Assembly (NCBI GenBank): GCA_977020255.1
Contig: CDROCS010000506.1
Span: forward strand, 434,001 to 498,000
DNA length: 64,000 bases
Reading direction: 5' to 3'
DNA from: Obrimoposthia wandeli
Taxonomy: Eukaryota
Shown: one piece after another, positions 47,838 to 64,000 of the stretch
Position numbering within the stretch: the first letter of the stretch is position 1
Layout: each line of letters starts with the position of its first letter
Position numbers and translations under genes: made by a program
Notes under the pieces: model-generated
Database searches by the model: none
What the model was told of the DNA's origin: nothing
The model's input: only the letters and a program-made list of their open reading frames with translations

Positions 47838-50153
47838 TTAAGCCATCACAGTGTCAATTTTATTACTCTTCAATACAGCCTCGGATAACACCACAGGAAT
47901 GGCTTTCGAAATTGGCGTATCACTCAAATCCCCTTTGCCATCGATAGAGACCAAGGGGTTAGTTTCAGGGAAATAAGCAGCAATATTTCCTTCTGGAATA
48001 TCATACGCAACGAGTTTAAAGCCAAACACTTTACGTTCAATACCATCAGGCCACAGCGATTCAATATCGACTAATTGACCGTTATCCATACCTAATGCTG
48101 CGATGTCTTTTGCGTTAACAAAAAGGACTCTACGTTCACCGGATATACCCCGATAACGATCATCAAAGCCATAAATGGTGGTGTTGTACTGATCGTGTGA
48201 ACGCATGGTTTGCAATACAAATACCGGGTCATTACTGAGCTCACGTAAATTGGCAGGCAATAAGTGAACAGGTAAATCATGTCGCATGAATTGTGCTTTG
48301 TTCGATGCGGTGTTCCATTGCCTCTGCGCAGCACTGTTGCCAAGGTAGAAACCACCGGGCTGCTTAATCTTATGGTTGAAGTCGCTAAAACCAGGGATGC
48401 TTTTTGCAATGAGCTCGCGTATTCGGGCATAGTCTTCAATCACCCAATCCCAATCAATCGGTTGCTTACCCAGTGTCGCTGCAGCTATACCGGCAATAAT
48501 CGCAGGTTCAGAGCGCATTTCGCCAATATCCCCAGCAACTACACCAGCAGAAGCATGCACCATACTAAACGAATCCTCGACTGTGATGCTTTGCGGCCCA
48601 GATGCTTGTATATCAATATCTGTACGTCCTAAACACGGTAATATGAGCGAGTCTTTACCCGCGATAAGATGGGTACGGTTTAGTTTTGTAGCAATATTAA
48701 CCGTCAGATTACAGTTAGATAATGCTTGTTTTGTTAACACAGTATCAGGTGTTGCTGCAGCAAAGTTTCCGCCTAAGCCAATAAATACCTTACTCTCGCC
48801 AGCAAGCATCGCTTTGATCGCTTCAACGGTATTGTGCCCCGCTGCTGTCGGCGCTTTAAAATCAAATTCAGCGGATATACTTTTGATAAATGCAGCGGTT
48901 GGCTTTTCATCTATCCCCATCGTGCGATCGCCCTGCACATTACTGTGCCCTCGTACTGGGCACAATCCAGCACCTTGCTGACCTAACTGGCCAAACAATA
49001 GCTGTAGATTAGCGATCTCTTGAATGGTTTTAACCGAATGTTTATGCTGCGTAATGCCCATAGCCCAGGTAATAATGACCCGCTTTGCTTGGTGATAAAT
49101 GTTAGCAGCGTGTTCTATCTCAGATTGTAATAAGCCAGCTTGCTCGGTGATGTCATGCCATGCAGTTTCTTTAACAGCGTTTAAGTATTCATCGAGACCT
49201 TGGGTATGCTCGGCAATGAATGCATGATCAAATATAGATCCCCGCCCTGCGGTTAGCTCAGCGTCGTCAATAACGCAAAGTGCTTTCACCATGCCACGAA
49301 CAACCGCCATGTCACCACCCAATTTAGGCGTAAAATAACATTGGCTAATTTGTGTCGAACCATCGGTTAGCATTTCCGTCACAGACTGTGGGTTGGTAAA
49401 ACGCTCTAAGCCTCTTTCTTTTAGCGTATTGAACGTGACGACTGCAGCCCCGCGGCGGGATGCTTGTCGCAGCGTATCTAACATGCGAGGATGATTTGTT
49501 CCGGGGTTTTGACCAAACACAAAAATAGCATCAGCATGCTCGAAATCTTCCAGTGTTACCGTACCTTTACCGATACCGATGGCTTGCTTTAGCCCTACAC
49601 CACTGGCTTCATGACACATGTTAGAGCAATCAGGAAAGTTATTAGTGCCAAATTTTCGCACAAACAGTTGATATAAAAAAGCCGCCTCATTACTTGCTCG
49701 ACCTGAGGTATAAAACTCAGCTTGATTAGGACTTTCAAGCGCATTTAAATGTGTCGCTATGAGCGCAAATGCTTGCTGCCAACTCACCGCTTCATAGCAG
49801 TCCGTCACACGGTTATACTTTACAGGGTGACTAAGCCGACCTTGGGACTCTAAAAAATAATCACTTTGCTGTGTTAACCAGCTTACCGGATGGTTAGCAA
49901 AAAAATCGGCAGTAACACGCCTGCTTGTCGCCTCCCAATTAACTGCTTTAGCGCCATTTTCGCAGAATTTAAACCGCGTTTGTTCTTTCGATTCGCCCCA
50001 GGCACAACCTGGGCAATCAAAACCTTGGTCTTGATTCGTTTTAAGTAAGTTACGAATATTACGAGATACATTTTCGCTTTTGACCAAATGCTTTGTCGTA
50101 CTTAATAGCGCGCCCCAACCACCAGCCGAACCTTCATATTTTTTAATTGTCAT
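47838..50153 (-). CDS. FdhF/YdeP family molybdopterin oxidoreductase
   Basis: GFDCPGCAW, FCENGAKA, SGRASNEAA, DCSNMCHE, GHSNVQG, RSHDQYNTT motifs. Confidence 0.93.
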   Translation of the reverse strand: MTIKKYEGSAGGWGALLSTTKHLVKSENVSRNIRNLLKTNQDQGFDCPGCAWGESKEQTRFKFCENGAKAVNWEATSRRVTADFFANHPVSWLTQQSDYFLESQGRLSHPVKYNRVTDCYEAVSWQQAFALIATHLNALESPNQAEFYTSGRASNEAAFLYQLFVRKFGTNNFPDCSNMCHEASGVGLKQAIGIGKGTVTLEDFEHADAIFVFGQNPGTNHPRMLDTLRQASRRGAAVVTFNTLKERGLERFTNPQSVTEMLTDGSTQISQCYFTPKLGGDMAVVRGMVKALCVIDDAELTAGRGSIFDHAFIAEHTQGLDEYLNAVKETAWHDITEQAGLLQSEIEHAANIYHQAKRVIITWAMGITQHKHSVKTIQEIANLQLLFGQLGQQGAGLCPVRGHSNVQGDRTMGIDEKPTAAFIKSISAEFDFKAPTAAGHNTVEAIKAMLAGESKVFIGLGGNFAAATPDTVLTKQALSNCNLTVNIATKLNRTHLIAGKDSLILPCLGRTDIDIQASGPQSITVEDSFSMVHASAGVVAGDIGEMRSEPAIIAGIAAATLGKQPIDWDWVIEDYARIRELIAKSIPGFSDFNHKIKQPGGFYLGNSAAQRQWNTASNKAQFMRHDLPVHLLPANLRELSNDPVFVLQTMRSHDQYNTTIYGFDDRYRGISGERRVLFVNAKDIAALGMDNGQLVDIESLWPDGIERKVFGFKLVAYDIPEGNIAAYFPETNPLVSIDGKGDLSDTPISKAIPVVLSEAVLKSNKIDTVMA

Positions 50154-50218
50154 TGTGATCCTCTATATCAATTATCTATTACAGGCATCTATTACAAGCG
50201 TCGGTTTCAGGCGCCAAT

Positions 50219-51277
50219 TTAAGACTCTGTATTATCATTAAGCAGGTTTAAACGGAAAGCACCATGATAGATATTGAATCCACCATCACGGCTAAAGCCT
50301 ATCAGGGTAAGGTTGAAGCGTTTTGCCATGTTGATTGCAAGGTTAGAGGGTGCGCCGACAGCCACTAATATAGAGATACCCGACACCAGTACTTTTTGAA
50401 CTAACTCGAAACTGATCCGCCCGCTTAGAAATACAATTTTATGCTGAGAATCAAGCTCAGTACTTCTTGCCAATTTGCCCATTAATTTATCTAGGGCATT
50501 GTGACGACCGACATCTTCACAGCTCAGTAATAGCTGACCTTTTTCATCGAATAAAGCGCAGCCATGTACCCCGCCAGTTTGGTTAAACATCGATTGATAT
50601 TGGCGAAGTTGCTCACTAAAATGTGGGATAACATGACCAGATAACCATCCTTCGCTGGTATCTAAATCGGCAATGTTACGCAGTTCTAAAGACTTTATAG
50701 ATGACTTGCCACATACGCCGCAGCTGGAAAATGAAGTGGTATCACGACTGATTAATGCCCAATCGACGACAACACTTGGTGCTAGTCGTACATAGATTTC
50801 ATTTTGATTGGTTTTATTTTGGTAAATGTCGTCTAAATCGAACTGCTCGTTAATGCCGACAATATCATTAGCACTGTTAATGATACCTTCCGCCAATAAT
50901 AACCCTGTTACCAGATTCAGATCGTCACCCGGTGTACGCATCGTCACTAAGTAAACTCGTTCTTGTTCTTTGCCTTCTGCGTTACTATAAATAAGCCTGA
51001 TCTCTAAAGGTTCTTCGATAATCACTGCATCAATGGCAAGGTTAATATTCACGCCATTTATCTGCTGCAAAGAACACATAGCAACACCCGTTGTACTTGA
51101 CGCAGGGTTTACCATTACCTTTGGCATACGGTCCAGAGGATTATGCTTTAAAGTCGAGCGTTGATAAGCAACATGAAAGGCAGTGTCTTTATTCACTAAT
51201 GCATCGCTTCTATTCGTTAATGTATCGTTTCTATTAACTAACGTATTACCTGCGGGATTTCTCTTTGGTTCAGCCAT
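50219..51277 (-). CDS. fdhD: Formate dehydrogenase accessory sulfurtransferase FdhD
   Basis: EEPLEI, MRTPG, SSCGVCG, TGGVHG, EDVGRHNALDK motifs; ATG at 51277 with GAGG SD preferred. Confidence 0.93.
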   Translation of the reverse strand: MAEPKRNPAGNTLVNRNDTLTNRSDALVNKDTAFHVAYQRSTLKHNPLDRMPKVMVNPASSTTGVAMCSLQQINGVNINLAIDAVIIEEPLEIRLIYSNAEGKEQERVYLVTMRTPGDDLNLVTGLLLAEGIINSANDIVGINEQFDLDDIYQNKTNQNEIYVRLAPSVVVDWALISRDTTSFSSCGVCGKSSIKSLELRNIADLDTSEGWLSGHVIPHFSEQLRQYQSMFNQTGGVHGCALFDEKGQLLLSCEDVGRHNALDKLMGKLARSTELDSQHKIVFLSGRISFELVQKVLVSGISILVAVGAPSNLAINMAKRFNLTLIGFSRDGGFNIYHGAFRLNLLNDNTES

Positions 51278-51384
51278 GGGACGCCTCACTCGACTAGATC
51301 TCGGTTAAAAATGGATATGCGCAAAACAAGACAGTTACACTACCGCTTACTAAGCAATAAACATATCGAGAAAATTTGTTCATT

Positions 51385-51641: not shown

Positions 51642-52406
51642 TTAATTAACAGAAGTAAAACTGACACACTCGATTCGATTGACCTCTAGCCAATCTTTTA
51701 ACGCTTGCGAAGTGAGAATATTAAACTCATCAACACGGTGGTCTACATAACTCGATAACGTCGGTAATAACGTATCCCCTGCTAATGTTGTATGGCTCAT
51801 TAGCTCTAACGTCCCATTTGGGATCTCGGCATTAAACTCAAGGATCAGTGCTTGCAGTCGCTCTAATGTGACACCTTCAGCGTAGAACCTCGCGCTAAAT
51901 GCTTCTGTCGTTGGTACGATTAAACCTTCACAGCCAGATGTAACATGGTCAACACGACGTACTGGTATTCCGGTATCGTTCGCAAAAGCAATAAATGCTT
52001 TTTTGTACGGAGGGAATACCGCAGCAAAATGATGGCTATCAATATGGGTTAATTTAATGCCCGCATTGATGGCTTTGTCATATTGCGCTTTAAACTCACT
52101 ATAAGCTTGATCAAAACTAAGTGTCTCAGCTGCAATCACTTTATCTTGTTTTAAAAAGAAACCATCACTGTCGACTAAATCAGGGACAAGACTCGCATCT
52201 AATACTGGTTTGCCACTAGTAAGCGTGACATGTAGACCAACATTCGGTATCAAGCCCTGCTTAATTAATTCAATCGCATGATCGGTTGCCGGTTGGTTCA
52301 TCATGATCGTGGTTGACTGCACAATACCAACTTTAAAACACGCGACAACAGATTCGTTTACTTTTTCAGTCAGACCTAAATCATCTATGTTTACGATTAG
52401 TTGCAT
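51642..52406 (-). CDS. chbG: Chitooligosaccharide deacetylase ChbG (YdjC family)
   Basis: NIDDLG, GLHVTL, THIDSHH, ELMSH motifs. Confidence 0.9.
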   Translation of the reverse strand: MQLIVNIDDLGLTEKVNESVVACFKVGIVQSTTIMMNQPATDHAIELIKQGLIPNVGLHVTLTSGKPVLDASLVPDLVDSDGFFLKQDKVIAAETLSFDQAYSEFKAQYDKAINAGIKLTHIDSHHFAAVFPPYKKAFIAFANDTGIPVRRVDHVTSGCEGLIVPTTEAFSARFYAEGVTLERLQALILEFNAEIPNGTLELMSHTTLAGDTLLPTLSSYVDHRVDEFNILTSQALKDWLEVNRIECVSFTSVN

Positions 52407-52417
52407 AAATCACTCTG

Positions 52418-53719
52418 CTATTTATTATTAAACTGAGGTAAATACTTCGCATTAATTTCAATCATCTCATCTAAAATTTCTTTCGTTACCGTGCCTTTAC
52501 GCACTAATGGATTGATTGTTAATGCTTGTAATGCCGCGCCGTAATCACCAAATACACCCGCTTCAACAGCCAGCTCTTCGAATGCTTTTTGTAATTGTAA
52601 CGTACCACGAATTGCCGGATTAGTAATTGGCGGTAGGTTTAATGGTTGTGGCCCACATGACGTTATCACAGACGTTGCTTCAATGGCACAATCATTAGGT
52701 AATTCAGAAATCGTACCGTTGTTGCGAATATTTACGTGCATTAATGTACGCTTATCATTGTGGATAGCATTAATTAGTTCGCATGCTGCTTCTGAATAAT
52801 GCGCGCCGCCACGCTCTTCTAATTGTGCTGGCTTAATATTAAGATTCACATCTTCGTATAATTTAAATAGCGCTGTTTCAATTTCTTGAACCTGCTCACC
52901 ACGTGTTACATAACCTTCTGATTTAATTTCTTTTTGCTCTAAATCGTCTTGCTTGTAGTAATACTGATGATAACCACACGGTAATGCGCCTAAGTGTTTT
53001 AATTGCTCAGGTACCCAAGTCACTTCGCCTAAGTTTTTAGGCAATGCAAACTCTTCACCAGAACATACTTTATCGATTAATTCACCAATACGATCTTTAC
53101 CGTGGTCCCAAATATGGAAGGCGTGGATAAAGTGATTTAGACCCGCGAATTGCACCTGCAGATCTTTCGTTCCCATCAATTCTTCAATACCAAACTGCGT
53201 ACATACTGGCACATTACATAGGCCAATTACTTTTATGTTTGTATGTTTCAGTACCGTTTCAGTAATAATACCTGATGGATTAGTGAAGTTAATTAACCAA
53301 GCGTCAGGACAGATTTCTTCCATGTCTTTACACAAAGAAAGCGTCACAGGAATAGTACGCATTGCTTTAGCAAAACCAGCGATACCATTGGTCTCTTGAC
53401 CAATCATGCCGTATTTATTACCCAGTAATTCGTCTTGTACACGCGCCGGGATCATACCTACACGCATTTGCGAACAAACATAATGTGCACCGGTTAATGC
53501 TTTACGACGATCAAATTCAATATTCAATTCAATATCAACACCGGCATTTTCAATCATGCGTTTCGCTAATGCGCCAACCGTCTCAACTTTATAACGGCCT
53601 TCTTCGATATCAAATAGATCTATGTGTGTTACAGGCAGTTCGTGATGACGATTAATGAAGCCTTCTATAATTTCTGGTGTGTAACTAGAACCACCACCGA
53701 TAATTGTAATTTTTAACAT
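52418..53719 (-). CDS. chbF: 6-phospho-beta-glucosidase, GH4 (ChbF/CelF)
   Basis: IIGGGSSYTP NAD-binding motif, GQET.G..G, NFTNPSG, GLCN, GLNH. Confidence 0.93.
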   Translation of the reverse strand: MLKITIIGGGSSYTPEIIEGFINRHHELPVTHIDLFDIEEGRYKVETVGALAKRMIENAGVDIELNIEFDRRKALTGAHYVCSQMRVGMIPARVQDELLGNKYGMIGQETNGIAGFAKAMRTIPVTLSLCKDMEEICPDAWLINFTNPSGIITETVLKHTNIKVIGLCNVPVCTQFGIEELMGTKDLQVQFAGLNHFIHAFHIWDHGKDRIGELIDKVCSGEEFALPKNLGEVTWVPEQLKHLGALPCGYHQYYYKQDDLEQKEIKSEGYVTRGEQVQEIETALFKLYEDVNLNIKPAQLEERGGAHYSEAACELINAIHNDKRTLMHVNIRNNGTISELPNDCAIEATSVITSCGPQPLNLPPITNPAIRGTLQLQKAFEELAVEAGVFGDYGAALQALTINPLVRKGTVTKEILDEMIEINAKYLPQFNNK

Positions 53720-53722
53720 GAT

Positions 53723-54043
53723 TTAGTCCTCGTTTTGAATTCGTCTTTGCAGCTCAATGATTTCGAATGCTAGGTCTTTACACAACATGGCATTCATAAT
53801 GTGATCTTGAATATGCGTTAAGATAAGCGTCATTTTTACTTTACCTTCACCTTCATCAAAACCGATAAGTGCGGTTTGTGATTTATGCACTGCTTCTAAC
53901 GCTTCATCAGCTTCTTTAAGTAATACTTTTGCTGATTCGAAATCACCTTGCCTTGCTTCTACCATTGCTTGCATTACAGCAGAGCGCGCTGCACCAGCTT
54001 GGCATAAAAGTGTCATCAAAAACTCTTCAGTAATTTCCATCAT
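53723..54043 (-). CDS. chbA: PTS lactose/cellobiose family IIA
   Basis: AG.ARS, AH/VH..QT.LI, L.HIQDH phospho-His motif; start placed after AAGGAA. Confidence 0.92.
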   Translation of the reverse strand: MMEITEEFLMTLLCQAGAARSAVMQAMVEARQGDFESAKVLLKEADEALEAVHKSQTALIGFDEGEGKVKMTLILTHIQDHIMNAMLCKDLAFEIIELQRRIQNED

Positions 54044-54145
54044 CCGTTCCTTCATCTTGCCATTATAATTTGGGGAGTTAATCAGCCATCTCTTACCTTA
54101 AACTGACTATAAAAGATGGCTATTGTGAATACTTACTACTTGTTA

Positions 54146-55486
54146 TTAACCCGCAGTTGCTGGTGATAATACTTTTTCGTCAGCGCTTTCTTCAAATTTT
54201 TCTTGTACTAGTAATTCTTTTTCATATGCTTTGAAGAATGGGTAGAAGATTAAACCACTCACGGTGAAACAAGTTGCAACGATAACGGCAGCGAACATCG
54301 AGTTTGTCGACATTACAGCACCGATTGGCGCAGGCATTGTCCATGGTGGTAAAGCAACAACTTTAGATACTAGGTCTAGTTTGAATGCACCCCAAACGAT
54401 ACATGCGTTAACTAATGGTGCAGCGATCCAAGGGATAAAGAAGGTTGGGTTCATTACAATTGGCGTACCAAAAGTCACAGGTTCGTTAATGTTGAAACAA
54501 CCTGGGATGAATGACATTTTACCAATCGTACGTAAGTGAGCTGATTTAGAGCGCGCCATCATACAAACAAGTGCTAATGTACCGCCTGAACCACCAACGA
54601 ATACGAAGAAGTCCATGACAGGGTTGATAAAGATAGCTGGTAATTCTCTACCTGCTTCAAGTGCTTCTTGGTTTGCACCTAAGTTGATGAGTAATAGTGG
54701 ACCAATGATGCCGCCAACAACAGATGCACCATGAATACCAGCAAACCATAATAATTGGATTAATAAGATAGCGAGTGCAAAAGCAAAGAATGTATCAGAT
54801 GCAGCAACAAGCGGTTTGAATAGCGCCATGATGCCTGTTGCAATGTTAAGGTCAAAGTTACCTAATAAACCATTGATGATTTGTACAATTAAGATCATTA
54901 CAACGACAGGGATAAGAAGATCAAACGACGCTGAGATTTTTTCTGGCACCGCTTCAGGCATTTTGATTCGAATATTTTTTTCAACAAGGAAAGTTTGCAG
55001 TGTTGGTACTAATAGACCACAAATGATAGCTGTAAATGCGCCTGCACCACCTAAGTAAGCCATCGGGATCACACTACCTAATTCGCCACCAACCCAAACA
55101 GCTGGAGCAACTGCGAGTAGGAAAGAGAACATAGACAGCATACCCGAGTTCATTGGGCTAACACCTTTGGTGTTAAGCGTCTCTGCTAAGTTGTATGCAA
55201 TACCATAAGCAGAGTACATTGCGAAAATACCCATACTAACAAAGAATGGACCAACAATATTGTCACGACCGATGCCTTGGACAACGGAGTTCCAACCATC
55301 TAAGAACCAATTACCAGTACCAGGGGGGTTAGCAAATACCAGCAGTAAAGAACCAACAATCAAGAACGGCATTGTTGAAATGAAACCATCTTTAATGGCG
55401 CAAATATGCTTTTGACTCGCGACCTTACCTGCAATAGGTGCGATAACGCGCTCGACAAAATTCATGGTCGAATTGATGAGTGACAT
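54146..55486 (-). CDS. chbC: PTS cellobiose/chitobiose family IIC
   Basis: AIKDGF, LWFAGIHG, GGSGGTL, FNINEP..FG.PIVMNP, YPFFK.YE motifs. Confidence 0.95.
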   Translation of the reverse strand: MSLINSTMNFVERVIAPIAGKVASQKHICAIKDGFISTMPFLIVGSLLLVFANPPGTGNWFLDGWNSVVQGIGRDNIVGPFFVSMGIFAMYSAYGIAYNLAETLNTKGVSPMNSGMLSMFSFLLAVAPAVWVGGELGSVIPMAYLGGAGAFTAIICGLLVPTLQTFLVEKNIRIKMPEAVPEKISASFDLLIPVVVMILIVQIINGLLGNFDLNIATGIMALFKPLVAASDTFFAFALAILLIQLLWFAGIHGASVVGGIIGPLLLINLGANQEALEAGRELPAIFINPVMDFFVFVGGSGGTLALVCMMARSKSAHLRTIGKMSFIPGCFNINEPVTFGTPIVMNPTFFIPWIAAPLVNACIVWGAFKLDLVSKVVALPPWTMPAPIGAVMSTNSMFAAVIVATCFTVSGLIFYPFFKAYEKELLVQEKFEESADEKVLSPATAG

Positions 55487-55569
55487 AAAAAACTTCCTTA
55501 TTTATAAAAATATGTATTGAATCACTGTAAAAAAATGCGCAGCGACAAGGCTACGCATAAATAAATTAT

Positions 55570-55878
55570 TTAACCCGCTTTTAAATCAATAGCTTGCTGT
55601 AGAATTTCTTTTCCCTTCATCATGCCGTATTGCATCATATCAATTTGTCCACACGCCACATTTTCTTCTTCACAGCGCTTACTGAATTCAGCGAATTTGT
55701 ATTTAACCTGTGGAGCAACCAAACAAACATCATTTTTCTTCAATTCAGTTTCAAATGCAGAAATAGAATAAGCATTAATTTCTGCAGCAACACCTGATGC
55801 CTCCGCAGCTTGACGCATTTTATTAACAACCATAGACGTTGACATACCAGCTGCACAGCAAAGGAAAATTTTAATCAT
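55570..55878 (-). CDS. chbB: PTS cellobiose/chitobiose family IIB
   Basis: CAAGMSTS phospho-Cys motif, L.APQV, YGMM.G. Confidence 0.95.
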   Translation of the reverse strand: MIKIFLCCAAGMSTSMVVNKMRQAAEASGVAAEINAYSISAFETELKKNDVCLVAPQVKYKFAEFSKRCEEENVACGQIDMMQYGMMKGKEILQQAIDLKAG

Positions 55879-56016
55879 TTTATATAGCCTCTTGATTTTA
55901 AAACTTAAAATTAATTTTAGGATGCGTTTTAAATTTATTTTAAATCGAATTCACGCATCCCCTTTTGAGGTATATGTTGCGCCAATGTTTTTTTGTTTAC
56001 AAACCATAAAAACTTA

Positions 56017-56038
56017 ATTTGTGATCTGAAATATGTTT
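56017..56038. promoter_or_regulatory. Possible CRP site upstream of chbB
   Basis: ATTTGTGATCT is a strong half-site; the second half is poor. A second candidate TTTGA-N6-TCACC lies at 56295-56310. Confidence 0.4.
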
Positions 56039-56363
56039 CAGGTGTAATTATTTATCACTCGTCAAAATCACATGATAATGCACATTACAAATACACAATT
56101 AAACTTAAAATATTTAACAAAACAAAATTAAAATAAAAATCTATTTAAAACAACAAGTTACCTATCTTGAGATGAGATCCAATTAATCACCCCACTGTCA
56201 ATTAGGATTTAAGCTCTAAGTTGAAATTAACAAATATAAAAAAACACTAAAAACAATTAAATAACACAAACCTTAATTCTTATTGTGAATTAACTTTGAT
56301 GTAGATCACCCTATTTTGCAGCAAGCATTAAATAAGAAGTAAAAACGAAGATAAAATCAGATC

Positions 56364-56389
56364 AAAAAAGGCGCCTAACTGGCGCCTTT
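56364..56389 (-). terminator. Orphan GC-rich terminator in the chbB-pilZ divergent region
   Basis: AAAGGCGCC-AGTTA-GGCGCCTTTTTT on the minus strand. Confidence 0.75.
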
Positions 56390-56646
56390 ATCTATTCATA
56401 TTAACCAGATAAATTACGAAAAAATTGGAATTTCACGAGGTTGTAATGTTAAATATATCTCAATAATATCGACCAGTATTAACGTGTAAATATAAGATGG
56501 ATTTTATAACCATAAAATTAAATGACATTCGCTATAGATCAAGATCACAAACATAAGATTAACTAAAATAAGTTGTTCATTGCGCTGCTACTTCATTGTT
56601 ATTAAACTAGATTAATAGGTATCAAGCTGAATAACGCTGTAATGTC

Positions 56647-57030
56647 GTGATTCGTTTCAACTCTAAATTAACATATGGATATACTATGTTTAGTGTAAAA
56701 AAAGATCTCTCTTTCAAGCTTAACCGCCAACACGCGAGGTTTAAGTATTGGAAAAAACACCCGGTATTATATGTAAACAAGCTCGGTATTTTTGACTTTT
56801 TCAGAATAACAATTGAAGTTGAAAATATATCTGAATCGGGATTACTTGCAAAAGTAACAACGAAAGGTAAATTCACTGTTGGTGAGAAGCTAATTCTTGA
56901 GTTTGATAATTATTTTACCGAGGTGATCCCTGTATCAGTGATTCGCTGGGAACCAGATAATCAGTTACTTGCCGTGGCATTTAATCGAGAAATAAAACTG
57001 ATCGAAAGGATTGCACTGAACATTTCGTGA
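56647..57030 (+). CDS. Stand-alone PilZ domain protein
   Basis: Both c-di-GMP motifs present: RQHAR (RxxxR) and NISESG (D/NxSxxG); VIRWE and AVAF at the C-terminus; ATG at 56686 is an alternative start. Confidence 0.88.
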   Translation: MIRFNSKLTYGYTMFSVKKDLSFKLNRQHARFKYWKKHPVLYVNKLGIFDFFRITIEVENISESGLLAKVTTKGKFTVGEKLILEFDNYFTEVIPVSVIRWEPDNQLLAVAFNREIKLIERIALNIS

Positions 57031-57041
57031 AATGTTAACTA

Positions 57042-57085
57042 AAAATCTCAACATGCCCTTTAAATAAAGACATGTATGAGATTTT
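57042..57085. terminator. Bidirectional hairpin between convergent pilZ and GT2 genes
   Basis: AAAATCTCA-ACATG...CATGT-A-TGAGATTTT. Confidence 0.6.
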
Positions 57086-57109: not shown

Positions 57110-58369
57110 TTAAGCGGCTTGCACTTCTTTTAGCCAGCCTTCAATTTCTGCTGGTGACATTACATTAGGATCACCTAACTGAGAGTCAGGCGTATCAGCT
57201 AAAGCTTGTGGTAAGGTATCAATGATTCTCTCAAGCACTTCATGCGATAACACTTGCTGCTCAAATACAGCTGCCATCTCTTGGTTATGCACCGCATTAC
57301 GCACTCTTACCGCCTTAATCAGACCATCGAGCAACGTAAACCAAGTCGTCATGGGTCCCTGCACAATAGATGCTGATTCTGCCGCTGAATCAATGAATGC
57401 AAATGGTACCGTGACGATCTCTGTTTCAAGTTCCATTGCCGCTAAAATCCAATCGGTATCAAACGAGAAGTCATATACCGTCGGCGATGCCATAATTTTG
57501 GTTAATACATCACGACTATAAAGCTTGAACGCAGCTTGCGTATCCTTAATGCCTTGGCTAAATATCTGCTGGCCAATCATACGCTGCATGTGACGCAAGG
57601 TTTTAATACCGACCCCCCAACGCTCTTCCTGCTTCACTAAAATTGAATCAGGATGCTTACGATTACCTAATATGACGTCATAATTTTCAGATAAGAATGG
57701 CTTTAACAACAAGCCAAGTTGGCCAAGATGTACTGAATTATCAGCGTCGGTATAAACAACACAGTCAACGTCATTAGCAAGCGCTCGCTGACAACCGTAA
57801 ACTATAGCTCCGCCCTTACGTGAATCATCCACATGTTTTAAATTTTTAAGGGGGCCTGTCGATGCAGGAACGACATCCGCTAAGCGTAATACTGACACCG
57901 TATTTCTATCAGGATGGTCTGCTAATATATTGCTGGCAATACTAGCACTACCATGTGGGCAACCATCATCAACAGGATAAAGATGCCAGCTGACAGGCGT
58001 ACCATTGGTGATCCAATTAAGCTGATTAATTTTGACATTCAGTGAGTCTTCACCATGGGGGTTATCGCTACTTTTTTGTAGCAGGCGGTGATGCTCACCC
58101 CACATTGCAAAAACGACACCAACCATCACAGGCTTAGATACCGTCAATAGATAGCGTTTAGATTCCACCAGTTTAATCGCTAAACGAAACTCCAGTGGAC
58201 AATTGCTCTCTCTTGCTAATGTTTGGTAATAAGCAGTCGAAATATCTCTCAAACAATACAAGGTATTGGCTAAATTCAAGAGATTTTTTTGATGTGAAGC
58301 TTCCGTTAAATCAAACTCGTTGCTTGAATTTAACAGTACTTGTTGTACTAATTCATGTGACGTTTTCAT
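57110..58369 (-). CDS. Glycosyltransferase family 2, Dpm1/Alg5-like, with N-terminal extension
   Basis: KGGA, VVYTDAD.S (DxD), LGNR, DTQAAFKLY, FSFDTD motifs match polyprenyl-phosphate glycosyltransferases; no TM helix evident. Confidence 0.8.
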   Translation of the reverse strand: MKTSHELVQQVLLNSSNEFDLTEASHQKNLLNLANTLYCLRDISTAYYQTLARESNCPLEFRLAIKLVESKRYLLTVSKPVMVGVVFAMWGEHHRLLQKSSDNPHGEDSLNVKINQLNWITNGTPVSWHLYPVDDGCPHGSASIASNILADHPDRNTVSVLRLADVVPASTGPLKNLKHVDDSRKGGAIVYGCQRALANDVDCVVYTDADNSVHLGQLGLLLKPFLSENYDVILGNRKHPDSILVKQEERWGVGIKTLRHMQRMIGQQIFSQGIKDTQAAFKLYSRDVLTKIMASPTVYDFSFDTDWILAAMELETEIVTVPFAFIDSAAESASIVQGPMTTWFTLLDGLIKAVRVRNAVHNQEMAAVFEQQVLSHEVLERIIDTLPQALADTPDSQLGDPNVMSPAEIEGWLKEVQAA

Positions 58370-58472
58370 CGCTAATCCTTTATTATCATAGATCCTTGGG
58401 CCTAATAATAAAGGTAGTATTTGAATAACGAACAGACATAAGGTTAGTGTGAAAGTTTGAACTAAATCGACT

Positions 58473-59648
58473 TTATTTTTTAATTACTGGGGCAAAGCTA
58501 CGGCGTTGTAAAGCTTCAACATTTTCATCTTTTATTGTCGCCATATTACCTCTGGCAAGCGGGTTATCCTGCACAGGCTTAACCGCCACCTCTACCTCCT
58601 TATCGACCTCCACCTTTGCCGTCGATTTTAATGCTGCTTTAACATTACTTTTAGGAGCTATCTCGTTAACCTCAACGAGCGGATCATGCTCTATCGCGGG
58701 CACGTCTATATCAATCGGTAGCGATAAGTCTGCGACAGCTATACGTGAACCGCCAGCATCAGGTGTTAATGTATTAGGCTTCATAATATTCGAATTACTA
58801 TCGACTGGTTGTGATAAACCTGACACGGCTACCTTTGAAACACTCGTCTTAATACTGTTATTTTCTGAGATAGCATTATCTTCTGAGTTAGCTTTGTCAT
58901 TTTCTGAGTTAGCACTATTACTTTCGGAGATAGTACTGTTATTTTCTGAGATAGCACTATTATTTTCTGAAATAGGCGCGTTGACTTCACTCGGAGTCAC
59001 AACAGGAGTAATTTGATTGCCCCTAAACGTGGCGGCCCCCAAACCGGACAGTTTTTTATTCGGCTGAAACGCACCTTTATAATTAACGACAGGTTGCGGC
59101 TGGCTAACGGTAGTTACATTTCGCTTACCACTGAGCCCCAGTTTAGGAGAGGTAAATGTGAAAACCGCTAATTTATCATTCCAAACCTGTAAAATAGACA
59201 AATCTTGCTGCCATTGATCAGAGTCATTAGCGGCAAGATCATTAACCTGCATAAATGCCGATAGCTGGGTATTAGTGGTTTCAAATCGTTGATGTAACTG
59301 TTTTTGAACTAAGGGCCAATTCGTTCCTCCCGTCATAAAATAACGTCCACTATCCGCCCAATACTGATAAGCAATAACATCGTTAGTTTTATCGGCAGAC
59401 ATAGCTGCAAGCGCTTCAGCTAATCCTGCGTATTGCCACATATGACGGTTGCCTAACTTAGCTTCAGAACGTAAAAACACCAAGCTTAATTGATGCCATT
59501 GATTCGCGGCCAATTTATACTTGCCTTGGCCAAGATAATGACTGGCTTTACTGTAATATTTTAATTCCATATTCACAGGTTCAGCATACGCGGTAACTTG
59601 GTAACAACAGCAAGATATAACCAGTGCTTGCCAGCTTATTTTTATCAT
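58473..59648 (-). CDS. Secreted hypothetical protein: helical N-domain plus low-complexity tail
   Basis: Signal peptide ending AYA-E; ATG at 59648 forms an ATGA overlap with the upstream DUF3131 stop. Confidence 0.75.
   Translation of the reverse strand: MIKISWQALVISCCCYQVTAYAEPVNMELKYYSKASHYLGQGKYKLAANQWHQLSLVFLRSEAKLGNRHMWQYAGLAEALAAMSADKTNDVIAYQYWADSGRYFMTGGTNWPLVQKQLHQRFETTNTQLSAFMQVNDLAANDSDQWQQDLSILQVWNDKLAVFTFTSPKLGLSGKRNVTTVSQPQPVVNYKGAFQPNKKLSGLGAATFRGNQITPVVTPSEVNAPISENNSAISENNSTISESNSANSENDKANSEDNAISENNSIKTSVSKVAVSGLSQPVDSNSNIMKPNTLTPDAGGSRIAVADLSLPIDIDVPAIEHDPLVEVNEIAPKSNVKAALKSTAKVEVDKEVEVAVKPVQDNPLARGNMATIKDENVEALQRRSFAPVIKK
58854..58976. repeat. In-frame tandem repeat, 6 units (21 bp, one of 18 bp)
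   Basis: Encodes ISENNS-AISENNS-TISESNS-ANSENDK-ANSEDN-AISENNS. Confidence 0.9.
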
Positions 59649-61033
59649 TGAAATGTCTCCACATGACATTTTCCAGGGTGATTAAAGCGAGAGTTAAAAC
59701 GTACATCTCGGTGTTCTTTAGCTTTGCCTGGCTGATATAATTTACCATTGGCTTTATACAATAATGCCTCAAGTACACCTGCATTAGTTTTTAGCGTAAT
59801 ACTCTTTTCATAACTGGCGTTTAATTCATAACGTCCTTCGTACCAACCCCGCGCAGGATCATATAACTCCCTGACTAAAACCATCAGGCGGTCGGTATAA
59901 TCTGTCTTCCATAATGCCCACATTTGAAAAGCAACACGGGTAGACACTAATGCGAGTTCATCATAAACATTACCGTCTTCAGCAACGGTTAACCAAGGCG
60001 TACCTAAAGCATAGATACTGTCATAGACAAAATAAGGTTCGCCTTCGACGACATGATCACCACGCGCCGTATAAATACGTTCTTCATCCCAACGAGACTC
60101 TTGGACACGGTAAACAGCATCGGCCATTGCCGAGAGTACTTCATCAGAATGGTAACTATCCAGAGAACCGGTATCAGTAATGCCATCCCAGTTAAACTCT
60201 AATCCGAGCTGTAAATAAGGAGTGCTCATCACCGGTCTTAACACGTTGTAGTGACGAGGATCGCGGCCATCAAAGAGTAAATCAATACCATTAATGGTAG
60301 CAACATCATAAGGGTCTACTCGCATACTCTTAGCTGGCACGATTTGCCAGTCTAGATAACCGTATGAGCTATACTCTTCAACACCTAAACGTCCCTCTTG
60401 GAAGCGCTGTGGCTGACCGTTAACAATCGAACCGCCAAACAATGAACCTTCTTCATTTACCAGCTCACAAAAATTCCAACGTAATACCGCTTTGTCTACG
60501 TATTCTGAAAATTCTTGATTGCGTTGCTTAACCAGCGCTAACGCAATTAATAATCGACCGACATCAACAGATGACCAACCAATATCATTCGGTTGCATGC
60601 CATAATCCACCATCTGTCCCGTACTTGTGGAATAGGCGATATTAGGCACTGACAATTGGCTTAAAGGCATCTCGACCAAAAAGCTAATGACCAGCGACAA
60701 GCGTTCATCATGCTCTTTAGTCGTGATCAATTCGAACTCTTGAGCGGCCATCAACGCAATTAAATAATCGGCAATCGCACTCATATTAGTACTCGGATAA
60801 TTGTCCAGAGAATTGACCAAGCCAGTTTTTAGTTGGGTATTATTCTCCACGTAGAGCCAAGCAGTTTGCGCCCACTGCATCTCGTCTTCATTTAATGCAC
60901 CGAAGCGCCCCTGACGGATTACTTGAGATGCACTAAATGATGTAATCCCCTCTTCCACGCTTTGGTACACAACCCCACATGAGGTTAATAATACTGCAGA
61001 GCATGCCATCATTAGTTTGCTCAACATTGACAC
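59645..61033 (-). CDS. DUF3131 domain lipoprotein, paralogue C (degenerate conserved residues)
   Basis: Lipobox LTSC; AW.Y..NN....TGL, IGWSS.DVGR, EGRLG.EEY, PYFVY, GWYEGRYE, TNAG.LE motifs shared with its neighbours. Confidence 0.82.
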   Translation of the reverse strand: MSMLSKLMMACSAVLLTSCGVVYQSVEEGITSFSASQVIRQGRFGALNEDEMQWAQTAWLYVENNTQLKTGLVNSLDNYPSTNMSAIADYLIALMAAQEFELITTKEHDERLSLVISFLVEMPLSQLSVPNIAYSTSTGQMVDYGMQPNDIGWSSVDVGRLLIALALVKQRNQEFSEYVDKAVLRWNFCELVNEEGSLFGGSIVNGQPQRFQEGRLGVEEYSSYGYLDWQIVPAKSMRVDPYDVATINGIDLLFDGRDPRHYNVLRPVMSTPYLQLGLEFNWDGITDTGSLDSYHSDEVLSAMADAVYRVQESRWDEERIYTARGDHVVEGEPYFVYDSIYALGTPWLTVAEDGNVYDELALVSTRVAFQMWALWKTDYTDRLMVLVRELYDPARGWYEGRYELNASYEKSITLKTNAGVLEALLYKANGKLYQPGKAKEHRDVRFNSRFNHPGKCHVETFQ

Positions 61034-61060
61034 TCATTCCTTAAGTCACCCACCATGATG

Positions 61061-62446
61061 TTAGATTTTACGAGGTAAGCACTTTCCCTCATAACCAAAT
61101 GGTGATTCTAATGCTTTATCCCATAAACTCGGTAACGGCTTACTTTGATAACGCATCAATTTACCTTGTTGTTTGAATAATAATATTTCCAATAAAATAC
61201 CATTATTATTTGATGTGAAAGTATTAATTAAGCCAGTACCATTTTCAAAGATACCTTCATAGAAGCCTTTTTCACGGTCATAAAGATGAGAAATGTGATC
61301 AAACAACAGATCTGTATATTCCGTATCCCATAATGCCCAAATACCCATTGCGCCTTTGACTGCTACCGCAGAGTATTGTGGTAAATATTCACCAGTTTCG
61401 GATATCGTATTCCACGCATAGCCATCAGTATAAAGCGTGTCATAGACAAAATAAGGCGCACTCGCTAACTGATGTTCCGTACGTGCAGTAATAATACCCG
61501 TTGCTTCATATCTGGCTTCTTGAACACGATAAATCTGCAGAGCGAATTCAGCCATCCATCCATTTGAATATGACGTGTCCGGACCTGAATGGTCTGTCGA
61601 TAAATCCCAACCTAATTCGATACCATCAAGGACATAACTTTCAGTTACCACGTAACTGTGTGCCTTTAATTTACGCGGATCACGGGTATCGTAAGGTACA
61701 TCATAACCAAATAAGTTAATGGTATTATAAGGTTCAGGCATTGACGCTGTTTTCGTATCAAAGCCCCATAACTGGAAACCTTTGGCAGCGTATTCTTCAT
61801 AACCTAAGCGGCCTTCTTGTAAATACTGAACAGGTTTACCTGGTTCTAATAATGCACCAAACATCAAACCGTCTTCATCAACAATATTACAAAAATTCCA
61901 ACGTAATACCGCAGAATCAATACCTGTGGCATATTCCGGATAACGATTTTTAATTAAATGCAGCCAAATTAACAAACGCCCTAAATCCAGTGCTGAATAA
62001 CCAATTTCGCCCGGCTGATTGGCATAATCTACTTTCGCTGCATTTTGCGTGTTATAGGCTTTATTTGGCATCTCACCACGGAATAAATCCATGGTGTTTA
62101 ACGTGGTGATAAAGCGAATTAGACGGCGGTCATACTCTTCTTTTTTTATAATACCGAGTTCTAGTGCACTCGTCATACCCGCTAAATACGAAGCCGCATC
62201 CCACCATGTTACTGATGGGTAATTATTTACCGCATTCACTAGCCCCGTAGATTCTTGATAATTATTCTCAAAATATTTCCATGCGATACGCGCCATGTCC
62301 ATTTCTTTCTCGGTCAAATCACCTTGTCTTGCAGGTGGAATTGACCAATGATCTTTTCTATCAACGATGTCTTCTGAAAAACTATTATATTTACTGCCAC
62401 AACCAGAGACCAGTAACCCTGCCAGGCAAACCATCGCTATCCGCAT
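61061..62446 (-). CDS. DUF3131 domain lipoprotein, paralogue B
   Basis: Lipobox VSGC; AWKYFENN, YPSVTWWD, PNKAYNT, EGRLGYEEY, VTESY, TARTEH, NNNG.LLE. Confidence 0.85.
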   Translation of the reverse strand: MRIAMVCLAGLLVSGCGSKYNSFSEDIVDRKDHWSIPPARQGDLTEKEMDMARIAWKYFENNYQESTGLVNAVNNYPSVTWWDAASYLAGMTSALELGIIKKEEYDRRLIRFITTLNTMDLFRGEMPNKAYNTQNAAKVDYANQPGEIGYSALDLGRLLIWLHLIKNRYPEYATGIDSAVLRWNFCNIVDEDGLMFGALLEPGKPVQYLQEGRLGYEEYAAKGFQLWGFDTKTASMPEPYNTINLFGYDVPYDTRDPRKLKAHSYVVTESYVLDGIELGWDLSTDHSGPDTSYSNGWMAEFALQIYRVQEARYEATGIITARTEHQLASAPYFVYDTLYTDGYAWNTISETGEYLPQYSAVAVKGAMGIWALWDTEYTDLLFDHISHLYDREKGFYEGIFENGTGLINTFTSNNNGILLEILLFKQQGKLMRYQSKPLPSLWDKALESPFGYEGKCLPRKI

Positions 62447-62470
62447 ATAAAACTCCCTGTGATATGCAAA

Positions 62471-63787
62471 CTATTTCGCACCAACACGTAATAATGTACC
62501 ATTTTGAACATAAGCAAGAGACTCTAAGATAATGCCATTGGTATTTGCTGTAATTGCTTTGTTAAGACGGCCATCACTTTCATAACGACCTGAATACCAA
62601 CCTTTTTGTGCTGAGTATAGGCTTTTAACATCACCCATTAACAGGCTTGTATACTCAGTATCGTACAAGGCGTACCAACCGAAGGATGCTTTAGTAGATA
62701 ATGTCTTTAAATGTGACGCATCTTCACCTGTATCTGAAATTGCATTCCATTCTTTACCGTCAGAAAACACCGTGTTATAAACAAAATAAGGCGCAACATC
62801 GACATTATCTTCACTCACAGCAGTTAAGATACCTAAGCGCTCGTAACGGTTTTCTTGCGCTTTATAAACACGATAGGCAAAGATTTCTGAAATACTGTCA
62901 GCACCAAATTCTAAACTATCTAAAATATATGACTCACTCACCACGTAGTTATGTGCATGGTACTTAGCCGGATCACGTCTATCTGTTGGAATATCAACAC
63001 CATCAATATTAACCATTTCTAAATAATCAATATATTTCATCGCGTTAAATACATCGAGACCCATTAACGATAACGCTTTAGAGGCATATTCTTCATAGCC
63101 AATACGTCCTTCTTGCACCAGTTCTAAACCACCTGTTTTTGCTGGGCGAGAACCATATAAATAGCCTTTGTCGATCAAGCTGCCAACATGCCAGTGATTC
63201 AATACATCGTTCACTTGCTTGTTATAGTCAGGGTATTGCCAAATAAGAATGTTTAACGGCACCAAAATACGGCCAATATCAATCGCAGACCAACCAATAC
63301 CATCAGCCACAGGGTTATTTGCATAATCCACCATTTCAAGAGTTTTGGTGTTATAAGCTTTGTTTGGTAGCTTGCCTTCGATCAAGGGTAAGCGCGCTAA
63401 TGTGTGTAGCACTTTCTCCATTTTTAAATCAAATTCCGCTTGGCTAACGATATTTAATTTTTCAGCGCCAATAAGCCCCATTAAATAAGACGCAGTATCC
63501 CACATCGTTGTAGAAGGATAGCCATCAACAGAATTTACAAGTCCGGTATTCGGCTGCACATTATTATCAAAATAACGCCAAGCAGTCTTGGCCCACTCAT
63601 ACTCTTCTGCTGTTAAAATACGGCTTTCACGCAGTGGAATAGGCTCTTCCGTGGTAAAAGATAGATTACCTAGTACTTGCGTGTACTCACGTGTTTCAAT
63701 TGTAAAAGCAATGACTAACGCAGTCACTAGACCACCAATAAATACAAAATGGTGACGCGCTTTAATTAAGTTTTGTTTAAACGCCAT
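62471..63787 (-). CDS. DUF3131 domain protein with N-terminal membrane anchor, paralogue A
   Basis: ATG at 63787 with GAGGG SD; TM segment FVFIGGLVTALVIAFTI; AWRYFDNN, YPSTTMWD, EGRIGYEEY, VSESY, TAVSED. Confidence 0.85.
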   Translation of the reverse strand: MAFKQNLIKARHHFVFIGGLVTALVIAFTIETREYTQVLGNLSFTTEEPIPLRESRILTAEEYEWAKTAWRYFDNNVQPNTGLVNSVDGYPSTTMWDTASYLMGLIGAEKLNIVSQAEFDLKMEKVLHTLARLPLIEGKLPNKAYNTKTLEMVDYANNPVADGIGWSAIDIGRILVPLNILIWQYPDYNKQVNDVLNHWHVGSLIDKGYLYGSRPAKTGGLELVQEGRIGYEEYASKALSLMGLDVFNAMKYIDYLEMVNIDGVDIPTDRRDPAKYHAHNYVVSESYILDSLEFGADSISEIFAYRVYKAQENRYERLGILTAVSEDNVDVAPYFVYNTVFSDGKEWNAISDTGEDASHLKTLSTKASFGWYALYDTEYTSLLMGDVKSLYSAQKGWYSGRYESDGRLNKAITANTNGIILESLAYVQNGTLLRVGAK

Positions 63788-64000
63788 ATTCAAATCCCTC
63801 TGATTCTTGTTCTTGTTTTTTTTCTGTTGGTGGAGTCCAAAATGCGGCAGCAATCATGCCCCACATCGCCATCATATTATTCACAATCCAAAAACTATTC
63901 AGTACTAACCCGCCAAACGAGTAATCACCAAAACTGCCCGTTACATAGCTAAACCAGGCAAAACACATACTGAATAAACTTAATACGAACACCCCTATTT
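63777..64000 (-). CDS. C-terminal TM helices of a probable processive GT2 glycan synthase (BcsA-like), runs off the window edge
   Basis: Frame is open to the edge; two hydrophobic helices including LVLNSFWIVNNMMAM, resembling the N..W...N last helix of BcsA-type synthases; overlaps the start of DUF3131-A. Confidence 0.55.
   Translation of the reverse strand, partial: IGVFVLSLFSMCFAWFSYVTGSFGDYSFGGLVLNSFWIVNNMMAMWGMIAAAFWTPPTEKKQEQESEGFEYGV

Follow-up and report, generated by a model that had tools for sequence, protein, structure and literature searches.

The window, a stretch of 64,000 nucleotides from Obrimoposthia wandeli (positions 434,001 to 498,000 of contig CDROCS010000506.1, assembly GCA_977020255.1), ends in a cluster of six co-directional minus-strand genes (57110-64000) that includes three tandem genes of the DUF3131 family. 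The first gene, GT2syn, encodes a membrane synthase and is cut by the end of the window, so that only its C-terminal 73 codons and the stop codon are present (63780-64000). It is followed by DUF3131-A (62471-63790), whose product has a single N-terminal membrane anchor and a periplasmic (alpha/alpha)6 domain, DUF3131-B (61061-62446) and DUF3131-C (59645-61033), which carry the lipoboxes VSGC and LTSC respectively, then by the gene for a secreted repeat protein of 391 aa with a signal peptide, here called X (58473-59648), and finally by GT2t (57110-58369), which encodes a GT2-like protein of 419 aa. The genes are tightly packed. The stop of GT2syn and the start of DUF3131-A lie in an 11-bp overlap (ATGGCGTTTAA), A and B are separated by 24 bp, B and C by 27 bp if C starts at a GTG or 33 bp if it starts at an ATG, and the ATG of X overlaps the stop of DUF3131-C in a 4-bp ATGA. 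A longer gap of 103 bp separates X from GT2t. A hairpin followed by a T run (57051-57075, minus strand), found by a consensus scan and so a pattern match only, begins 35 bp past the GT2t stop and likely marks the 3' end of the operon.

The open reading frame listing and its translation thus bore out the preliminary description of six packed minus-strand genes with these overlaps and gaps. The same gene order was found in 64 other species, so the arrangement is not due to chance. NCBIfam had no model for any of the five window proteins. Low-depth contigs from a marine metatranscriptome were at least 99% identical to the window over most of the cluster; they show that the organism, and perhaps the transcript, was present but do not demonstrate an operon transcript.

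The three tandem proteins proved to be DUF3131 proteins, as had been proposed, with matches over the full length of the family model. Each covered positions 1-367 of the Pfam model PF11329 with scores far above the gathering cut-off of 20.3 bits (A, 482.6 bits, E 1e-144; B, 410.6 bits, E 7.5e-123; C, 324.7 bits, E 9e-97), and the three were 35-41% identical to one another. Of 66 orthologues of A, 65 had a hydrophobic N-terminus that lacked a lipobox; the anchor of A and the lipobox signals of B and C recur among orthologues. When orthologues were assigned to A, B or C by gene position, each group formed one clade with support of 99-100 (100 for A), indicating that the triplication is old. DUF3131-B was the most conserved paralogue. 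It shared 97.6% identity with the protein of a relative that is 84% identical in nucleotide sequence, compared to 95.0% for A and 91.5% for C, and about 60 of its polar or aromatic positions were near-invariant across phyla. Most of these are retained in A. In C, by contrast, W82, D83, K129, E147, Q210, Y216, H263, Y265, E269, E324, N346 and N413 (B numbering) were lost or relaxed, whereas D154, R157, E211, E277, Q309 and R312 were kept, a pattern that would fit a non-catalytic C but does not prove it. Invariant positions that are candidates for the catalytic residues of the clan are D154, E211, E217/E218, E277 and Y332-F333-Y335 (B numbering). An exhaustive search divided DUF3131 into 986 clusters at 50% identity, some of them made up of proteins in which three or four DUF3131 domains are joined in one chain, and such natural fusions argue that the paralogues act together. 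Proteins P0121, P0123 and P0124 of the representative library, for example, are 1393-1820 aa long with 3-4 DUF3131 domains each.

To place the family among known folds, an AlphaFold model of DUF3131-B was built from 41 sequences (predicted local distance difference test, pLDDT, 91.4). The 19 top Foldseek matches in the PDB were all beta-1,2-glucan enzymes, from GH144, GH192, GH189/Cgs, GH194 and GH162. Structural comparison gave the highest value, 32.9, for the GH189 cyclisation domain of the Thermoanaerobacter cyclic glucan synthase Cgs (8wy1), with a root-mean-square deviation of 2.9 A over 347 residues at 18% identity. Agrobacterium Cgs followed at 29.4, GH144 at about 29, GH192 at 26.6, GH194 at 25.5 and GH162 at 22.9, while unrelated six-hairpin enzymes reached 21 or less; members of the beta-1,2-glucanase clan therefore superimpose on the (alpha/alpha)6 barrel of DUF3131 better than other six-hairpin enzymes do. 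The GH8 enzyme BcsZ was also among the fold matches. DUF3131-A, -B and -C are all (alpha/alpha)6 proteins.

Sequence comparison told a different story. The alignment with GH189 was limited to the first ~95 residues (about 52-145; profile E 1.4e-4, single sequence E 0.008), and the DUF3131 profile matched residues 999-1094 of Cgs at an E of 0.72, which is not significant. Neither single sequences nor the profile matched the GH144, GH192 and GH194 founders (5gzk, 8xuj, 8xuk) at E up to 1. Since a weak partial match to GH189 was all that the PDB sequence searches returned, membership of DUF3131 in GH144, GH189, GH192 or GH194 was rejected even though the fold is common to them. The preliminary description had equated DUF3131 with the GH189 region of Cgs and related it to GH144. 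As for the fold, this stands, and the superposition it expected was obtained with the B model; at the level of sequence it does not. DUF3131 is a separate sequence family beside GH189 that has, judged by the model, the fold of the beta-1,2-glucanase clan, and it is probably a new family of glycoside hydrolases or transglycosylases. In the paper that defines the clan the term DUF3131 does not occur and the family is not among the groups treated; the catalytic triad described there consists of a Glu general acid (E211 in CpSGL, E1356 in TiCGS), a Phe and a Tyr (PMC12102758). In GH189, E1442 is the nucleophile and E1356 the acid/base of a retaining transglycosylation (PMC10834661).

The remainder of the system lies beyond the end of the window and was read in relatives. 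DUF3131-B of the window was absent from the contig index, and the contigs of a 98%-identical protein were used instead. On these contigs and in Photobacterium profundum 3TCK the locus opens with a gene on the opposite strand for an exported protein of 333 aa. It continues with genes for a response regulator (RR)-PP2C phosphatase, a STAS protein, a GMPPB-type nucleotidyltransferase, an RsbW-like kinase, a GH2 protein and a GH9 protein, followed by GT2syn, DUF3131-A, -B and -C, X and GT2t. In all, the system numbers about 13 genes, of which the six in the window are only the distal ones; the operon as originally delimited was right in its six genes and too short in extent.

Relatives numbered at least 592 in a pattern scan that took a single genome from each species, and 80 loci were retrieved. 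Synteny was counted by annotation with hidden Markov models in 64 full-length loci of distinct species. The synthase, DUF3131-A and DUF3131-B were present in all 64, DUF3131-C in 55, STAS in 61, the RsbW-like kinase in 60, RR-PP2C in 59 and the 333-aa exported protein in 55; in most loci that lacked this last protein, its expected site fell outside the fetched flank. The remaining genes were less constant, with the nucleotidyltransferase in 36 loci, GH2 in 32, GT2t in 26, X in 24 and GH9 in 12. The core of the system thus consists of the synthase, DUF3131-A, -B and -C, the RR-PP2C/STAS/RsbW-like switch and a 12-stranded barrel (the 333-aa protein, see below), and it occurs in 64 species of at least seven phyla. 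Carriers include Vibrionaceae, Shewanella and Ferrimonas; Enterobacterales such as Yersinia ruckeri, Edwardsiella piscicida, Enterobacter, Pantoea and Erwinia; Burkholderiales; and Rhodobacterales, which have two paralogues. Overall the range spans Gamma-, Beta- and Alphaproteobacteria, Desulfobacterota, Acidobacteriota, Bacteroidota/Ignavibacteria and Sericytochromatia. Shewanella abyssi has two whole clusters in opposite orientation on one contig (L017, 27328-48707; L018, 58702-80081), each copy followed by a fourth DUF3131 gene and a barrel gene.

In relatives GT2syn is 616 aa long (orthologue L001:6820-8670) and lies directly downstream of GH2 and GH9. The orthologue matched E. coli BcsA with an E of 4e-38, and the motifs DDG, DAD, FCCGxxSxHRR and SED were intact. 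At the site of QxxRW, GT2syn has QRFKY, and QR[FY]KY was found in 78 of 78 aligned orthologues. Its score against the NCBIfam CelA model was 208 bits compared to a cut-off of 699. No PilZ domain was present in the full-length orthologues, and neither BcsB nor BcsC was among the called genes of loci L001, L004, L005 and L086. In agreement with the earlier view, therefore, the synthase gene does not sit in a bcsABZC operon, at least in the relatives with 84% nucleotide identity.

The 333-aa protein had no significant match in Pfam, the best being PLA1 at 26.8 bits with a cut-off of 27. In a model built from 32 orthologues (pLDDT 81) a partly helical N-terminal stretch leads into 12 antiparallel strands, and its structural matches were outer-membrane barrels only (NanC, FapF, OmpG, OmpM1 and OmpF). 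Because this barrel accompanies the synthase in almost all taxa, we count it as a core part of the system and as a candidate exit channel. An outer-membrane barrel suits an exported polymer, and with it comes one alternative to be weighed, namely that the cluster makes a cellulose-like beta-1,4 or mixed-linkage glucan as an exopolysaccharide and that the DUF3131 proteins are processing hydrolases or chaperones in the manner of BcsZ. BcsA enzymes are the only solved relatives of GT2syn and BcsZ is among the fold matches of DUF3131. In addition, GH9, which has a signal peptide and whose closest relatives are endo-beta-1,4-glucanases and a xyloglucanase, lies directly upstream of the synthase in Photobacterium and in the 12 loci mentioned above. 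We consider this alternative rather unlikely, though it is the strongest of those weighed here.

A product other than a glucan, such as a beta-mannan or glucomannan made from GDP-sugars, would place the substrate of DUF3131 beyond the known range of the clan. Plant CslA enzymes, which belong to GT2, make mannans. The GH2 protein has a lipobox and its closest solved relatives are beta-mannosidases (E 5e-35), and the best NCBIfam match of the nucleotidyltransferase is mannose-1-phosphate guanylyltransferase. The clan itself is not restricted to beta-1,2-glucan, as PgSGL4 shows. However, the nucleotidyltransferase (L001:1061-2335) is far closer to PDB entry 8x7s, labelled UTP--glucose-1-phosphate uridylyltransferase (E 1e-123), than to the best mannose enzyme (E 2.5e-28); a literature search found no paper for 8x7s, which may come from an orthologous cluster. 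GH2, moreover, is missing from half of the loci, and a glycogen phosphorylase gene adjoins the cluster in Yersinia. Taken together, these results make a mannan improbable, and the sugar polymerised is most likely glucose from UDP-glucose.

Three further genes of the upstream half are those of a partner switch. In relatives, outside the window, a STAS antagonist (TIGR00377, E 1.6e-16, with the phosphorylation motif DSSG), an RsbW-type kinase (Pfam HATPase_c_2) and a PP2C phosphatase (receiver plus SpoIIE domains) are encoded together. No solved relative of the RsbW-like kinase was found, and the genes called in the inspected loci included none for a sigma factor. The nucleotidyltransferase gene is nested between the STAS and kinase genes, suggesting that the target of the switch is the enzyme itself. 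Hybrid histidine kinases with CHASE/PAS and Hpt domains are encoded beside the cluster in Yersinia, Burkholderia and Sphaerotilus, as is a PAS hybrid kinase in one Ignavibacteria genome. In Yersinia ruckeri (L061, 1-20787) a glycogen/maltodextrin phosphorylase gene lies on one side, and a CHASE-PAS hybrid kinase with Hpt and an RR-GGDEF protein on the other, which suggests a link to the supply of glucose-1-phosphate and to signalling by cyclic di-GMP (c-di-GMP). OpgC is encoded near the cluster in Edwardsiella, and in Klebsiella as well (PMC12974863). In a network study of Shewanella, DUF3131 genes belonged to a salt-shock module (PMC8371737).

X and GT2t, the last two genes of the window cluster, occur mostly in Vibrionaceae, Shewanella and Ferrimonas (nearly all of the loci with X come from Vibrionaceae and Shewanella) and are lineage-specific additions to the system. 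X consists of a signal peptide, a conserved N-terminal domain of ~215 aa, a hypervariable repeat rich in Ser, Asn and Glu, and a conserved C-terminus of ~35 aa. No Pfam or NCBIfam match was found for it, and its N-terminal domain gave weak TPR-like leads in the Atlas, all below 0.9. X is 57% identical to its L001 orthologue, which is 351 aa long, with the insertions and deletions located within the repeat. A 21-bp tandem repeat of six copies (58854-58975, minus strand; Tandem Repeats Finder score 139) encodes ISENNSx heptads there. The repeat varies in length and sequence between strains; in a metagenome contig of a related strain it was replaced by other sequence, with joints at 58571-58658 and 58727-58997. 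GT2t matched PF00535 (Glycos_transf_2) weakly, at 31 bits, and was 84.2% identical to its counterpart in the relative with 84% nucleotide identity. It is a soluble GT-A glycosyltransferase without a clear membrane segment, and Atlas features and structure placed it next to polyprenyl-phosphate glucosyltransferases of the Alg5/Dpm1 type and glucosyl-3-phosphoglycerate synthases.

On the other side of the hairpin, and convergent on the cluster, lies a gene for a stand-alone PilZ protein of ~115 aa (56683-57030, plus strand). Its Pfam score was 22.7 bits against a cut-off of 22.5, and both c-di-GMP binding motifs, RxxxR (RQHAR) and NxSxxG (NISESG), were intact. The gene was found in L001-L003, the closest relatives, and not in the other 80 loci. 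The stretch from 55500 to 57000 is AT-rich (GC about 0.30, compared to about 0.40-0.44 around it) and lies between the cluster and a minus-strand phosphotransferase system (PTS) operon of cellobiose/chitobiose type (51642-55878) that encodes IIB, IIC, IIA, a GH4 phospho-glucosidase and a YdjC/ChbG-like deacetylase. Relatives have other genes at this place, and the AT-rich stretch may thus mark a junction of gene neighbourhoods. The genes further away (47838-51289, minus strand) encode a molybdopterin oxidoreductase of 771 aa and a protein of the FdhD/NarQ family; they look like ordinary genes of formate-dehydrogenase type with no relation to the cluster.

The PTS operon might be taken to indicate that the locus serves catabolism or turnover, with DUF3131, GH2 and GH9 degrading external or self-made beta-glucans and the GT2 being incidental. 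Five exported proteins with glycosidase folds are encoded in one cluster, and the characterised stand-alone members of GH144, GH162 and GH192-194 are all hydrolases (PMC12102758). In relatives, however, the PTS operon does not accompany the cluster, and it is probably unrelated. The synthase is present in every locus and its gene runs into that of DUF3131-A, the core includes no sugar importer, TonB receptor or cytoplasmic glucosidase, and a dedicated sugar-nucleotide enzyme points to synthesis. With a synthase that is universal and coupled to DUF3131-A, and a core without an importer, we regard a catabolic role as very improbable.

The cluster is best read as a synthase-dependent glycan system in which known folds occur in an undescribed combination. 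With moderate confidence we take the window to contain the distal half of the machinery for making and processing a beta-glucan and probably also for exporting it. Of the possible chemistries, a beta-1,2-linked product, which may be cyclic, is the most likely one, but we put it forward as a tentative choice only. With similar reserve we suggest that the cluster may represent a third route to secreted or periplasmic, possibly cyclic, glucans of the beta-1,2 type, beside Cgs and OpgGH. This route would combine a BcsA-like synthase without PilZ and with QRFKY as acceptor motif, which extrudes the chain, one membrane-tethered and two lipoprotein enzymes, all GH189-like, which size or cyclise it in the periplasm, a dedicated 12-stranded barrel for its release, and a post-translational switch without a sigma factor whose target is a metabolic enzyme or the synthase. 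DUF3131 would then found a new family of the clan. Several observations weigh against a beta-1,2-glucan or call for caution in reading the locus. To our knowledge, the characterised BcsA-like GT2 enzymes form beta-1,4 or beta-1,3 links and not beta-1,2. The GH9 and GH2 accessories do not point to a beta-1,2-glucan either, one belonging to a family of beta-1,4-glucanases and the other being closest to beta-mannosidases, and the GMPPB-type family of the nucleotidyltransferase also holds GDP-mannose enzymes. PgSGL4, a member of the clan, is inactive on beta-1,2-glucan (PMC12102758), so the substrate cannot be read from the fold. The genes upstream were examined in relatives with ~84% nucleotide identity to the window (95-98% identity for the DUF3131-A and -B proteins), the RNA signal in the metatranscriptome could be DNA carry-over, and our literature search found DUF3131 mentioned in four papers, in passing only, with no functional study, activity, product or phenotype.

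Gene content, homologies, folds, export signals and conservation were observed; from them we infer an account of the substrate and linkage, of transglycosylation or cyclisation, of the sequence of steps, and of what the barrel does and the switch acts on. A sensor kinase, such as the CHASE/PAS hybrid kinases that adjoin the cluster in several taxa, would set the activity of the phosphatase. Dephosphorylated STAS would then capture the RsbW-like kinase and free the target of that kinase, which may be the pyrophosphorylase, the synthase or both. The synthase would polymerise UDP-glucose and thread the chain into the periplasm, where DUF3131-A might receive it as it emerges at the membrane. A and B could cut and transfer the chain, cyclising or sizing it as GH189 does, while the degenerate DUF3131-C might bind the product or hand it over, and the barrel would let it out. 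GH2 and GH9, where present, may serve in trimming or recycling.

The module is ancient and widespread, and its carriers include the fish pathogens Yersinia ruckeri and Edwardsiella piscicida. In Klebsiella pneumoniae it is part of an accessory block associated with PC1, the principal axis along which the population of the species is structured. In other bacteria, beta-1,2-glucans and periplasmic glucans control adaptation to osmotic change as well as symbiosis and virulence. Once the product is known, many genomes would therefore gain a new envelope or secreted glycan. Its identification would probably also establish a new CAZy family. QRFKY would then serve as a variant acceptor motif with which to study the way processive GT2 synthases determine linkage, and the switch would provide a clear case of partner switching that controls an enzyme and not a sigma factor.

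A bcs operon, an Opg system, a fragment of Cgs and a degradative locus were each rejected as the principal account of the cluster on the basis of gene content, motifs and membership tests. The proposal that its architecture differs from those of Cgs, OpgGH and bcs was sustained, with no GT84 or GH94 domain, OpgG or OpgH, BcsB or BcsC found. Cgs is a single fused polypeptide with a GT84 polymerase, a GH94 domain that controls length and a cytoplasmic (alpha/alpha)6 domain. In the cluster, separate genes encode a BcsA-like GT2 polymerase and three or four DUF3131 paralogues that face the periplasm, no cluster protein has a GT84 or GH94 domain, and sequence identity between Cgs and DUF3131 is too low for family membership. 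Export also differs, since Cgs relies on the ABC transporter NdvA/ChvA whereas here a small outer-membrane barrel would serve. As for Bcs, GT2syn is homologous to BcsA, with the D, DxD, FxxGxxxxxRR and (T/S)ED motifs, and in both systems an (alpha/alpha)6 periplasmic enzyme stands alongside the synthase, joined in some taxa by an endoglucanase. Bcs, however, has PilZ, BcsB, BcsC and QxxRW, while the cluster lacks the first three and has QRFKY in place of the fourth, and control by the built-in c-di-GMP receptor of Bcs is replaced by a partner switch. With OpgH and OpgG/OpgD the cluster shares the principle of an inner-membrane GT2 that feeds glucan to periplasmic paralogues of a glucanase or transglycosylase, but no cluster protein matched the OpgG/OpgD (GH186) or OpgH families in Pfam or NCBIfam. 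The GH186 fold is a beta-sandwich, unlike the (alpha/alpha)6 fold of DUF3131.

Among the enzymes of the 'SGL clan' (Nakajima et al. 2025, PMC12102758), GH144, GH162, GH192, GH193 and GH194 have no detectable sequence similarity to DUF3131 and occur in degradative gene contexts, whereas DUF3131 is encoded beside a synthase. The closest parallel for the regulatory genes is the control of polysaccharide production by partner switches without a sigma factor, as in SypE/SypA of Vibrio fischeri and in a module reported for the heterocyst polysaccharide of Anabaena (PMC10120452; 10.64898/2026.04.08.717354). Here, too, the RR-PP2C phosphatase, the STAS protein and the RsbW-like kinase are encoded in a polysaccharide locus that has no sigma factor gene. 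SypE is one protein of three domains and the polysaccharide machinery it accompanies is unrelated to that of the cluster, in which the switch is made up of three separate proteins.

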